A stretch of 63,700 nt of DNA, filler included, from Pelomyxa schiedti (taxonomy: Eukaryota; Protista; Evosea): NCBI GenBank assembly GCA_020536535.1. It is 10 parts of 10 records of this genome, joined end to end, with 100 filler letters (N's around TTAATTAATTAA, not from the genome) between each part and the next. Parts side by side here need not be neighbours in the genome. Positions count along the whole stretch, not along the records: positions 11,626 to 12,847 come from JAHLWZ010002679.1; 9 more parts are not named here. One strand, written 5' to 3'. Position 1 is the stretch's first letter. Each line of letters starts with the position of its first letter. The translations under genes and the position numbers were made by a program. Shown here in pieces: positions 5,557 through 12,847 of this stretch. Below the pieces are notes generated by a model that was not told the DNA's origin, made no database searches, and saw only the letters and a program-made list of their open reading frames with translations.

Positions 5557-5984
5557 GTTCTCCTGTTTATTATGGTCTGCCCTCCGCTGCTGTGAAGAAG
5601 TTCATTGACTTTACCAATGTTCATCATGGAAAGGTTAGGCCCTGTGTGTTCGTCATTTATCTCTAAGCATTGTATTTCTGTAGCTGGTAGGGAAAGTTGG
5701 AGGAGCTTTTGCCAACAGTGCAGGCGTACATGGGGGCTGTGAGACCACAATCCTCGCGCTTAATAATGCCCTCTTGATTCACGGAATGGTCATTCAAGGT
5801 TGTCTTAGCCCAACCCCATTTCTAGTTCCCGTGTGGCTGATGAATGTATGCATAATTAGGTTGCAGTGAGGGCCTCCATTACGGCGCCGCGGCCGTAGAA
5901 ACCCCAACGGAAAAGGACATTGAGTGCTGCAAGCAACTTGGTGCCAGAGTTGCCAAACTAGCACTCAAGCTCCATTCTTCTTGA
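5557..5984 (+). CDS. wrbA: WrbA-type flavodoxin-like NAD(P)H:quinone oxidoreductase (5' exons unresolved)
   Basis: Three exons splice to GSPVYYGLPSAAVKKFIDFTNVHHGK/LVGKVGGAFANSAGVHGGCETTILALNNALLIHGMVIQ/GCSEGLHYGAAAVETPTEKDIECCKQLGARVAKLA...*. Motifs GSP.YYG, GKVGGAF, GG.ETT and L.HGM.IQG are those of the WrbA family. Confidence 0.85.
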
Positions 5985-6316: not shown

Positions 6317-9121
6317 TCAGGGGAAATGGACAGACTTTGGTACTGACGAAGAAGATGACGAGGATGATGCTGTTGAAGTGGGTGAAGAGGAGTTTGTTGT
6401 TGTTGTTCTTGATGAAGGAGAGACTGAGGAAGAAGTGGTTGCTGGCTTTTTGCCGGGTTTCACAGGGAACACCAACTCATCAGGATCCAGAAGTAGGGGT
6501 AGTGGCGAATGCAAGTACTCCCTCATTGTGGTAATTACTGCCGAATTTATCGGCTTCGGGGATGCGGAATCGGGGACAAAGGACAGTGCTAGGCGTGCCA
6601 GCTGGCCCATGCTAAGTGTAGGGAATGCCTTGGAGCAGTAGGTCGGGTTAAGTAGTACGTTTTTGTCTCCCAGGAGAAAGTTGGCTGCTTCGCGGAGATG
6701 TTCCAGGAAGAATCTTGTCATAGTGTGAGATACACCGAAAGTCTAGTTAATTAATTGCTTTTTTTTTTTATTTAGAAATTTAGAACAGGTTTTACTTTGC
6801 TTTGACTAATCCTGGAATTTGCTCAAAGTAGTCATCCAAGAGTGCGAGACCATATTTGATTTGCACACCATTTGTACCAGTGCCTATAGTTCTTAGGGAA
6901 GAAATATCATGAAACACAAGCATACAGAAGTGCGGATTTTCCATTAGAGCATTGAAGAGGATGCAGTTAATAATGTGAGATATGTGACAGAAGAATTGCA
7001 GTGTCAGGCTTGTAACAACTTTAGAAGAGGCAAATCGGTAGAGAATTCGGTCTAACACAAACACTAAATTTGTGCATACACGCTGGGACCTGGTGGATAG
7101 ACACATAAGAGCTAAGAGCTGGAACTAAAATATTTACCTTTCTTGTAAAACAATGTGGTGCTTTGTCTTGGCACCATCTGAGTCCTCTTTTTTTGATAGG
7201 AACTGCAGAACCAATGGTTCAATTTTCTACGGAAAATGAGAATCAACAAACAGTGGTCCAAAACTTACTGTGTGAGTTCTACGCATAAGCAAGCGGAACC
7301 CATCAAATAAGACTTGCCTCAGCTGATAAATGAAATAGGCTGTCGGTTCCCCAGCATTACAAGAACCTGGGGCCACAACATAGTTGAGTTCCTCAGTTGT
7401 GAGTCTGCAACAAGTAAGAAAGGGGAAAAAGAAGTGCGACATACGGGACAAGATTGTCAGAGTGCCTGGAAACAGCATCAGCATACAGAGTTCTGATTAG
7501 GTGATAAACACAAGAGAGCCAATAGCAAGAAGAAACGCATCGAGACTTTCACAAAAGAGTGAGACATACAGTTAGTAAGGAAAAATTACAACCTTGGACA
7601 CATAAGATAATGATTGAATAACTCGAGAGAGTCTCGTTGTTGTGAGAGGGGTAGCAGCCTCCCATTTTTGAATTTGTCCCAAAATCAGGGAGGCTGGCTC
7701 TGGAATACTGTTAACACCAAAGACGGGCTCCTCGACATGAAAGACAGTCTCCATAAGGAAGTGTTGCATGTAGCTATCTTCATAAAGCATGTCAATTTCA
7801 TCCTGAGATTGAAAAAGTTATTTCTAGAAATGTAATGTTGGTTACAAACAGCATGTTTTCCTCCAAGTTGCTCCAATCGTTTAGCATATAAAGCAGCAGC
7901 AGCTTGAGCTTCTTGATGGTGATCTTCAAGGGCTTGCTTTGCTTTGCTCAGTTCTGCCAGAAGGTCCTGTAACCGCTTGTCAGCTTCTTCCAGCTTCTTT
8001 TGAAATTCAGAGGAGAGTTTCCTTTTTTCCGTCTTCAAGAAAAAAAAATGTGAGCTTGAAAGGAAGATTTTTTGAATTTACCTCATTTTCCTGCTCCAGT
8101 ATAGCTAAACGTTGTTTACATTCAGTTGAAATTTTTTCAGCTCTTGCAGACTCCAACTTGATCATTGCAGAAGCGTGTTTCCGTTGAACGGCATTGGCCT
8201 CTCGTGCTTGCTCCAATTCTTGTTTTACCAAATCCATTTCTTTTACCAGTTCTCGTACTTTCCTCTGCAACACGTCTTTTTCCTCTTCAACTTGCTTAAA
8301 TTTGGAGGAGAGTTGAAGCAAGGAAGTGCGTTCCTTTGAAAGAGTTGCCTCAGAAAGTCTTAACTTTTCTTGCAGCACCGCCACATCAGTTGTCTGTTTC
8401 ACAGAAGAAGATGGTTTGGAGAAGAGCCCAGAAAGAGAGGGGAATTGAGATTCGCGCTGCGCTTTTTGTTTAAGAGCATCTTCAAGGTGAGACTGAAGAG
8501 AGGAAATCTCTGAGGCCAGTAATTGATTTTGAGTCATCAGAGTGGTTTCAGATGAACGCACAGACTCTAGCTGAGAAGAAAGAGTGCCTATCTGAGATGC
8601 AAGACGTTCCTGTGTGCCACTGAACTGCAACTTCATTTTGGCCTCCATCTCATCAATATTTCGAGCATGTTCCTCATGTGAAACCTGAAGACAGAAGTCT
8701 TTCTCCCTTAAAAGAGCAGAGACACGTTCAGTGAGAAGACCTTCCATGGCCTGTTTCAGTTCAGAGAGTGTTGCAGAAGAAGCGAGTTTTTCAGCGTTTA
8801 CGGCGTTTTGCTTTTCGGCATCCAGTGAACTTGCTTGTTGCTCGAGTGCCTTCTGCTTCTCTGCGTCGAGTGCAGATTGCAGCTGCTCGAGTGCATCCTT
8901 CCTTTCTGCGTTGAGCGCCGCTTCCTGTTGCTTGAGTGCGTTCTGCTTCTCGGCATCCAGTGAACTTGCCTGTTGTTGCAAGGCGTTTTGCTTTTCGGCG
9001 TCCAGTGAACTTGCTTGTTGCTCAAGTGCCTTCTGCTTCTCTGCGTCGAGTGAAGATTGCAGCTGCTCGAGCGCATCCTTCCTTTCTGCGTTTAGTGTGG
9101 TTGCCTGCTGCTCGAGTGCCG
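6317..9121 (-). CDS. Long coiled-coil protein with C-terminal DIL (dilute) domain, spliced, 5' truncated; possibly a myosin V/XI-like tail
   Basis: Coiled-coil exons (8007-9121, 7685-8038) are followed by FFCHISHIINCILFNALMENPHFC...TGTNGVQIKYGLALLDDYF and LEHLREAANFLL...FPTLSMGQLARLALSFVPD, the two conserved blocks of the DIL domain. The 3' end is uncertain (may extend to ~6000). Confidence 0.75.
8805..9119 (-). repeat. Seven coding 45-bp (15-aa) tandem repeats, ALEQQASSLDAEKQN-like
   Basis: Units read ALEQQATTLNAERKD, ALEQLQSSLDAEKQK, ALEQQASSLDAEKQN, ALQQQASSLDAEKQN, ALKQQEAALNAERKD, ALEQLQSALDAEKQK, ALEQQASSLDAEKQN; units 1-3 recur as 5-7 (180-bp higher order). Confidence 0.93.
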
Positions 9122-11625: not shown

Positions 11626-12313
11626 GGTACAACGGCGGGTGATTCAAGGAAAGGCCATTAGAATGAACGCTCCGGCCGTTCCTGTGAATGGCCGGCTCTG
11701 TCCCTAACTAAGTTTCCCGATGATTCTTGGAACTTGCTCTCTGACACCGATGCTTTGGGGTGTTGCAGAACGGGGAGGACTGGTTGGTTGAGGAAGTCCT
11801 GTCATACACCCAAATGAGTGGGACCTTTTCTTTCGTTGTGAGCACTGATCCCTCTGTCACCAGACGTTTTTGACGCCGTTGTCCGACCCGTTCGACTTGG
11901 GTGCTTGTGTGCACCTGTTTGGGGTTGCTTGTGGCTCAAGGGTGTACAATTCAAAGAGCAAGAGGAGTGCTACGGTCATTGGGGTTCACAGCGCCAGGTT
12001 GTGGATAGAGACAAGGGTGCAAGTATGATGCCATACAAAAATAAAAAACAGGGTGGCTGTTTTTTTCCCTATCACTTTCCTGTAAAAAAAGCCAGGGGAA
12101 CGAAACGAAACGAAACTCGAAAGGATTTATTGATACGATTACCCCTCCACTTCCATCCTCGCTAATAAGGTGAAAAACCAAACATAAACTGAAGAGTTTT
12201 TATAAAAAGAAGACGATGACAACCTGCTGTCTATGTGGGTGTTGTTTGTTGGTCACGGCTCTGGGCACTGACGTCGGTGTTGATTGTTTTCACGGAAAGT
12301 GCAGTTGTGTCTC

Positions 12314-12847
12314 ATGGTGAGCCGGGTGATCAACGTCGTTGTACTCAGACATAATTTGACCTTGGTGTTACGTCGGGGAAGTTGTTACTTTCTTGCTCAG
12401 CTTTTGTAGTATTTAGTCGTAAATAGGCTCGCTTGAAAAAAGCAATTGAAGTTTTCAAGCTAGAGCGCCCTGATGTGGGCATTAACGTGGAATGGGCCAC
12501 TTTTTTATTGCAACCCTCAATTCCTTCCCCTTCTATTGATTGGAAATTGGCCTATGGGTACTTTTTTTCCCTGAAGTTCCCACTATTCAATAATTATTTT
12601 GGAGGCTCTATGCTGGTTGGACAAGATATGAGCAACACCCTGCCTATAAACAAGATGGACTTCCATTTGCAAATTGGCCCCACGTTCCAAATACAGTATC
12701 CACCTCGGAGTTTTCTTTCACCTAACCTACATTTATATATTAACAGGTAAATGCTCACCGTTTGATCTGTCACCTCCCAAAAGAAAAGAAGAATAAAGCC
12801 GTTTCACTATTGTTCTTCAAAAACTATGAAGTGGGTCCCTGTTTTGC
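12314..12847 (+). CDS. FrnE-like DsbA-family thiol:disulfide oxidoreductase with UxxC motif (candidate selenoprotein); 3' truncated
   Basis: Spliced product YSDII*PWCYVGE/ARLKKAIEVFKLERPDVGINVEWATFLLQPSIPSPSIDWKLAYG/LYAGWTRYEQHPAYKQDGLPFANWPHVPNT/VNAHRLICHLPKEKKNKAVSLLFFKNYE, using introns 12381-12426, 12558-12604 and 12696-12746. It aligns with the FrnE pattern SD..CPWCY.G..RL.KA...V.W.PF.L.P...NT..AHRLI. TGA at 12357-12359 occupies the first Cys. There is a frame break between MVSRVINVVV and YSD. Confidence 0.85.

Follow-up and report, generated by a model that had tools for sequence, protein, structure and literature searches.

A FrnE/DsbA-type gene of Pelomyxa schiedti with TGA at the first active-site cysteine codon is a probable selenoprotein gene

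A FrnE/DsbA-type oxidoreductase gene of Pelomyxa schiedti, in which TGA takes the place of the first cysteine codon of the active site, is probably a true selenoprotein gene, as judged from its sequence. Decoding of this TGA as selenocysteine (Sec) seems to be the best reading of the gene, because one copy is intact, with the TGA in frame, and is followed by a SECIS-like hairpin. One copy of the gene lies in the window, that is, the whole stretch of 63,700 nucleotides, within a piece at 11626-12847 (45% G+C). The other, L130, is a locus on the public 31-kb contig JAHLWZ010000999.1 of assembly GCA_020536535.1, of which 16.3 kb was examined. Taken as a whole, a Sec FrnE gene in P. schiedti, with an intact copy in L130 and a disabled or misassembled copy in the window, is the likely state of affairs. 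Sec insertion, and a Sec machinery in Pelomyxa, are what we infer from features seen directly in the DNA: the gene structure, the TGA common to both copies, the frameshift, the constraint on the exons and the SECIS-like hairpin.

The string Y-S-D-I-I-stop-P-W-C-Y-V-G-E is encoded at exactly 12342-12380. It corresponds to the redox motif S-D-x-x-C-P-W-C-Y-x-G, with the first Cys replaced by the TGA at 12357-12359. Both the position of this string and the alignment to a FrnE HMM confirmed the proposal of an earlier, sequence-only reading that the TGA falls on the first catalytic Cys. A HMMER/phmmer search with exon 2 (43 residues) gave one true match, KAH3743338.1 (P0001), at 100% identity; this is the GenBank entry "DsbA family protein [Pelomyxa schiedti]", and the earlier guess of an archamoebal source was borne out by it. 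The other phmmer matches (P0002-P0004) were repeat proteins and were discarded as spurious. The window segment 12314-12847 is 94.8% identical to L130 5411-5952. The features of the piece are as follows.

11626-12313, no strand: upstream flank, no feature detected, unrelated to the 5' sequence of the intact Pelomyxa copy
12314-12380, plus strand: exon 1 of the FrnE-type gene, with ATG at 12314-12316; 67 nt (69 nt in L130); aligned with L130 5411-5479, it shows 1 substitution and a 2-nt gap
12340-12343, plus strand: site of the 2-nt deletion, which shifts the ATG against the TGA/CPWC frame
12357-12359, plus strand: TGA, candidate Sec codon, position 1 of the active site U/C-P-W-C; counterpart at L130 5456-5458
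12366-12368, plus strand: TGT, second (resolving) Cys of the UxxC motif
12381-12426, plus strand: intron 1, 46 nt, GTTGTT...AAATAG, GT-AG, phase 0; 7 substitutions and 1 indel relative to L130
12427-12557, plus strand: exon 2, 100% protein identity to KAH3743338.1 residues 114-156; 1 silent change relative to L130
12558-12604, plus strand: intron 2, 47 nt, GT..AG, phase 2; junction matches the GenBank model
12605-12695, plus strand: exon 3, from the alignment to L130
12696-12746, plus strand: intron 3, 51 nt, GT..AG, phase 0, from the alignment to L130
12747-12830, plus strand: exon 4, from the alignment to L130
12831-12847, plus strand: first 17 nt of intron 4 (GTGGGT...), aligned with L130 intron 4 (5936-5952) and cut at the edge of the piece

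The three clean introns described earlier (46, 47 and 51 nt) were upheld: they have GT-AG borders, the HMM alignment runs smoothly across them, and the GenBank protein model of the 95%-identical copy is spliced at the same sites. The terminal "VGPCF" is non-coding, as exon 4 ends at 12830 and the last 17 bases belong to intron 4. As the piece ends inside this intron, neither exons 5-6 nor the stop codon and 3' UTR of the window copy are included. An intron 2 of 29 nt, with donor 12576, was dropped as an alternative; the GenBank model has an intron of 47/48 nt at this place. Rfam and tRNA scans of the piece gave 0 matches. A Cys-rich ATG ORF of 34 codons (M-T-T-C-C-L-C-G-C-C...) is present at 12216-12320 on the plus strand, in the same frame as the TGA. 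This ORF is a by-product of T/G-rich non-coding DNA.

Assignment of the gene to the FrnE/DsbA family, as already suggested by the sequence-only reading, agrees with the profile searches. The FrnE HMM was built from the 67 Cys-type ORFs among 120 bacterial loci, which had been chosen by the degenerate motif S/T-D-x-x-[C/U]-P-W-C-Y-x-G. The spliced window product matched this HMM with 56 bits (E ~1e-18), and the alignment was smooth across the three exon junctions. The CPWC motif accounts for 18.7 of the 56 bits; the rest comes from exons 2-4, which were not used in selecting the training set. This match beyond the selection motif, together with the smooth junctions, means that the gene really belongs to this family and that its intron model is real. 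The product of L130 gave 124.9 bits (E 2e-40) over HMM positions 4-206 of 217. Furthermore, Pfam DSBA (PF01323) matched residues 114-298 of KAH3743338.1 with 55.6 bits, against a cutoff of 25.6.

Single exons of the window copy gave no matches in Pfam and PDB, as they are too short, and exon 2 was equally without matches when used in a word-based protein search. Exon-2 peptides, searched against metagenomes, hit 600 pattern stretches, 0 of which were confirmed. When residues 114-298 were used in a word-based search, the relatives found were only ~32-33% identical, and no close orthologue was available for comparison. The Pelomyxa protein is 30-37% identical to the sampled relatives, whether these are bacterial or eukaryote-like. 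It should be mentioned that both Pelomyxa copies have Glu immediately after the conserved Gly of C-P-W-C-Y-x-G (12378-12380 in the window; 5477-5479 in L130). The same position is occupied by Lys in 105 of the 119 sampled bacterial homologues, and the substitution, adjacent to the active site, is unusual.

In L130, the 5' end of the gene is read in one frame as M-A-S-R-V-I-N-V-V-V-Y-S-D-I-I-TGA-P-W-C-Y. The gene model combines the junctions of the GenBank model with the true exon 1 and consists of six exons.

L130 5411-5479: exon 1
L130 5527-5657: exon 2
L130 5706-5796: exon 3
L130 5852-5935: exon 4
L130 5981-6125: exon 5
L130 6219-6325: exon 6

This gene has 208 codons and five GT-AG introns, and its single internal TGA is codon 16. 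Its own terminator is also TGA, three residues beyond the end of the family profile match. Residues 114-298 of KAH3743338.1 correspond to the true exons 2-6, whereas residues 1-113 are derived from unrelated upstream exons (within L130 3815-5410) that contain 0 Pfam families. The deposited model skips exon 1, in which the ATG, the TGA and P-W-C are located (L130 5411-5479), and this leaves the deposited protein without an active site. The omission is probably due to the in-frame TGA, as gene finders usually produce an artefact of this sort at a Sec codon. The genes around the FrnE-type gene are of eukaryotic type (TBCD, MIT-domain and RabGAP-TBC). A tRNA scan of the 16.3 kb of Pelomyxa genome in L130 found none.

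The window copy differs from L130 in its reading frame. The coordinate frame is 2 for ATG 12314 and 0 for the TGA and CPWC. The span given in the sequence-only reading begins with this ATG, and the difference in frame had escaped that reading. When the sequence is read directly from ATG 12314, a stop is reached shortly past the splice junction. Frame 0 of the window also has TGAs at 12318 and 12327, and no ATG follows them. Compared with L130, 2 nt are missing: the window has GTTGTAC (12338-12344) where L130 has GTTGTGTAC, within a TG repeat. This 2-nt loss accounts for the shifted ATG as well as for the two "extra" TGAs. An open frame running from ATG through UGA to a stop is found in L130 (208 codons, one internal TGA) and is absent from the window copy. 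With a 2-nt deletion between its ATG and its TGA, the window copy, as assembled, is therefore unable to make the protein. Either this copy is a duplicate or an allele that was disabled recently, or its contig, which is short, was misassembled at the deletion.

The similarity of the two copies starts within a few bases of the ATG (12314 in the window; 5411 in L130). When the 688 nt on the 5' side of the window ATG were compared with L130 (16.3 kb) by blastn, there was no match, not even with a word size of 7. This break in similarity at the ATG might mark the breakpoint of a duplication, a structural variant, or a chimeric join in an assembly from a single cell (MDA).

The window copy might nevertheless be functional, if the 2-nt gap were an error in a short, low-coverage contig or if an upstream exon restored the frame. 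The deletion lies within a TG dinucleotide repeat, which is prone to slippage, and the low exon divergence described below speaks against a long neutral history. In addition, 11 ATG-initiated GT/AG models with a single TGA could be enumerated, the best of which scored 53 bits. In the rescue-exon version, translation would begin at ATG 12233, and a 97-nt intron (donor 12252, acceptor 12348) would lead to M-W-V-L-F-V-D-I-I-U-P-W-C. The rescue models, however, score below the unspliced reading, and T/G-rich DNA should yield such GT/AG pairs by chance. Moreover, the ATG and the next 27 nt are conserved between the window and L130 with one substitution, which shows that the ancestral exon 1 was contiguous, and L130 has an unrelated 5' flank. 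The upstream-exon models were set aside in view of the contiguous, conserved exon 1 of L130, and a functional window copy is considered unlikely.

The frame also bears on the meaning of TGA in this organism. If TGA were a sense codon, for example for Cys as in Euplotes, frame 0 of the window would be open from ATG 12216 through the TGAs at 12318, 12327 and 12357, and Cys would restore the CPWC motif. However, the two upstream TGAs disappear once the 2-nt deletion is recognised. TGA terminates two of the five gene models in L130, namely the FrnE-type gene itself and the neighbouring TBCD gene, and long neighbouring proteins are predicted under the standard code. Because TGA is an ordinary stop in L130, a genome-wide reassignment is excluded, and a sense TGA in this gene is a very improbable explanation.

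Comparison of the two copies indicates that the exons have been constrained. The copies differ at 6 of 373 aligned exon positions and at 14 of 161 aligned intron positions (Fisher p 2e-4), in addition to several intron indels. This means that exon divergence after the split was five-fold below intron divergence, and the TGA-bearing gene was therefore under selection. The TGA-bearing frame has evidently been translated, to judge from these substitutions. The exon changes comprise four non-silent and two silent ones, which are too few for dN/dS to be informative. A window lineage that had been neutral since the split should have accumulated ~16 exon differences (P = 0.003). From the low exon divergence it follows that the frameshift in the window is either recent or an assembly error.

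The same comparison bears on the origin of the TGA. A sequencing error, or a gene from a bacterial symbiont or contaminant, might be suspected from the shortness of the window contig and from the prokaryotic symbionts that Pelomyxa carries (PMC10579272). The TGA is present, however, in two independently assembled sequences that are 5% different, and it is therefore no sequencing error. The gene has spliceosomal introns and lies among eukaryotic neighbours on the 31-kb contig. An erroneous or foreign TGA is thus hardly credible.

An indication of how the TGA might be read is located on the 3' side of the gene in L130. A SECIS-like stem-loop is formed by L130 6368-6454, in the 282-nt spacer before the next gene, and begins 43 nt past the stop. 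Its parts are as follows.

Lower stem, L130: 15 bp, followed by an internal loop
Core, L130: G-U-G-A at 6385-6388 opposite U-G-A at 6430-6432
Upper stem, L130: perfect 9 bp and two further A-U pairs
Further parts, L130: unpaired C-C-A-A (AA at 6404-6405) and a 3-bp mini-stem

The hairpin has an MFE of -41.8 kcal/mol (z = -4.56), which was matched by 0 of 200 shuffles. With a SECIS pattern-plus-pairing scanner, which was written once the candidate had already been seen, the hairpin was the sole match on both strands of L130 (32.6 kb), with 0.25 matches expected from Markov simulations. The same scanner found 5 matches in 1.85 Mb of unrelated loci, 0 of them at the candidate's own quality. Even in a relaxed form it found an element in only one (L129) of the nine metagenome contigs described below, which means that it is not a sensitive general detector.

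The core of the hairpin is GUGA instead of AUGA, and the unpaired AA is 14 nt past the core. In the classic SECIS pattern, the AA follows 10-13 nt after the core. The Rfam SECIS covariance models gave no match to the hairpin, even at E values up to 10 on the 282 nt, and Rfam searches of the window piece, the metagenome loci and L130 detected no SECIS and no other RNA family. Eukaryotic SECIS elements are described as having two stems, an internal loop, an A/G-UGA_GA quartet and an unpaired AA, and GUGA_GA cores are a known eukaryotic variant, noted in Ostreococcus (PMC11227280). All of the listed features are shown by L130 6368-6454, on which the Rfam models were silent.

The position of the hairpin is also of interest with respect to the second TGA of the gene. 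From the terminal UGA it is 43 nt to the lower stem and 61 nt to the core. A UGA-SECIS spacing as short as this is at or below what Sec insertion needs. The short spacing fits a terminal UGA that serves as a stop.

A different explanation of these features is that both copies are pseudogenes, the TGA being a nonsense mutation that predates their split and the 3' hairpin being fortuitous. The silence of the Rfam models would agree with this, as would the frameshift in the window copy and the GenBank model that bypasses the TGA exon; a Sec machinery in Pelomyxa, moreover, has to be supposed. Apart from the TGA, however, the frame of L130 is intact over 208 codons and five GT-AG introns, and the five-fold lower divergence of the exons (p 2e-4) is not expected of a dead gene. 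The stop sits at precisely the codon used for Sec in homologues, and no hairpin of such quality with a GA/GA core was found in 1.85 Mb of other DNA. We regard two pseudogenes as unlikely. Sec recoding, the central claim of the sequence-only reading, is thus well supported for the gene through L130, where the ATG and the TGA are in frame and a SECIS-like hairpin occupies the 3' UTR; for the window copy, with its broken frame, it is not.

The preferred reading, Sec decoding in the intact copy, can be put as the following scheme. The source of the piece is Pelomyxa schiedti (Archamoebae) or an organism very closely related to it, and the gene is a nuclear, intron-bearing one for a FrnE/DsbA-type thiol-disulfide oxidoreductase, residue 1 of whose CxxC motif is encoded by TGA. 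The L130 mRNA would be read from its ATG, with selenocysteine inserted at the UGA of codon 16. This decoding would be directed by the 3' UTR stem-loop acting as a type-II-like SECIS, with a GUGA_GA core and an unpaired AA. The predicted enzyme has 208 residues and U-P-W-C as its active site. Its synthesis would stop at the second UGA, which seems to be too near the SECIS for recoding. The window copy carries the same TGA, has lost 2 nt between ATG and TGA and has an unrelated 5' flank.

Replacement of the first Cys of this motif by TGA is not confined to Pelomyxa. TGA at this codon, with an intact downstream frame, was found in 5 of the 120 bacterial FrnE loci (L003, L036, L038, L044 and L071). 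These are consistent with bacterial Sec forms, as far as the codon and frame go. The TGA-bearing hosts are Dehalococcoidia, a betaproteobacterium and Acidimicrobiales. In bacterial selenoprotein genes, the SECIS hairpin is located just 3' of the UGA, within the coding region. The Pelomyxa gene shares the fold family and the Sec position with the bacterial DsbA-like/FrnE-like selenoproteins; however, it has an intron 21 nt past the TGA and an element of the eukaryotic type in the 3' UTR. The FrnE of Deinococcus radiodurans is an example of the Cys-type FrnE/DsbA proteins (PF01323). With these the Pelomyxa gene has in common an end-to-end profile match and the SD-x-x-C-P-W-C-Y-x-G signature, and it differs from them by TGA in place of the first Cys.

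Nine metagenome contigs (L121-L129; JGI and others) encode S/T/A-D-I-I-TGA-P-W-C-Y in full-length FrnE-like frames of ~215-290 codons, and their G+C contents range from 30% to 69%. One of them, L124 (69% G+C), has a bacterial look. The rest probably represent Sec-FrnE genes of marine eukaryotes. Two contigs, L125 and L126, are almost the same in sequence, and L129 has an apparent intron and a downstream SECIS-like hairpin of the ATGA type. The column in question is thus occupied by TGA in the five bacterial loci, the nine metagenome contigs and the second Pelomyxa copy, which answers the earlier expectation of Cys or Sec in homologues.

Sec DsbA/FrnE proteins have been reported from three Ciona-group tunicates and Micromonas pusilla (PMC2874816) and from Mamiellophyceae and Mesostigma viride (PMC6627142). 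Together with our own scans, these reports substantiate the earlier statement that UxxC versions occur in bacteria and some eukaryotes. DsbA-like and FrnE-like selenoproteins of marine bacteria are on record from the Sargasso Sea selenoproteome (PMC1088965). The eukaryotic Sec-DsbA/FrnE genes of Ciona and the algae belong to the same family as the Pelomyxa gene and have Sec at position 1 of U-x-x-C near the N-terminus. They are nuclear genes with a 3' UTR SECIS, as seems likewise to be the case in Pelomyxa, where L130 has the SECIS-like hairpin. The differences are in the host, which is an anaerobic archamoeba and neither an alga nor a tunicate, in the low identity to sampled relatives (~30-37%), and in the SECIS-like core, which is GUGA rather than AUGA. 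Sec FrnE/DsbA and GUGA-core SECIS elements are both already on record, and no new mechanism is involved.

According to the sequence-only reading, Entamoeba, the best-studied member of the archamoebal lineage, is without the Sec trait. No literature was found that links Pelomyxa, Mastigamoeba or Archamoebae to selenoproteins or Sec use, and seleno-terms are absent from the supplements of the P. schiedti genome paper. Within the searchable literature, the Pelomyxa FrnE is apparently the first selenoprotein candidate in Archamoebae. Dictyostelium, an amoebozoan, has tRNA-Sec and five selenoproteins (PMC13063481), which makes retention of Sec in an archamoeba plausible rather than startling, and metamonads with Sec biosynthesis are known (PMC10703272).

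On balance, it seems that P. schiedti, a strict anaerobe, keeps a working Sec decoding system for a U-P-W-C FrnE, with a type-II SECIS of the GUGA-core kind, and that the window holds a very recently disabled second copy. If this is true, the public annotation would have to be corrected, the active-site exon of KAH3743338.1 having been left out by a gene finder that steered clear of the TGA. It would also mean that even a fragmentary assembly from a single cell can yield individual selenoprotein genes. For the organism itself, the Sec trait would be placed in Archamoebae, and the gene would provide a data point on the retention and loss of Sec in anaerobic protists.
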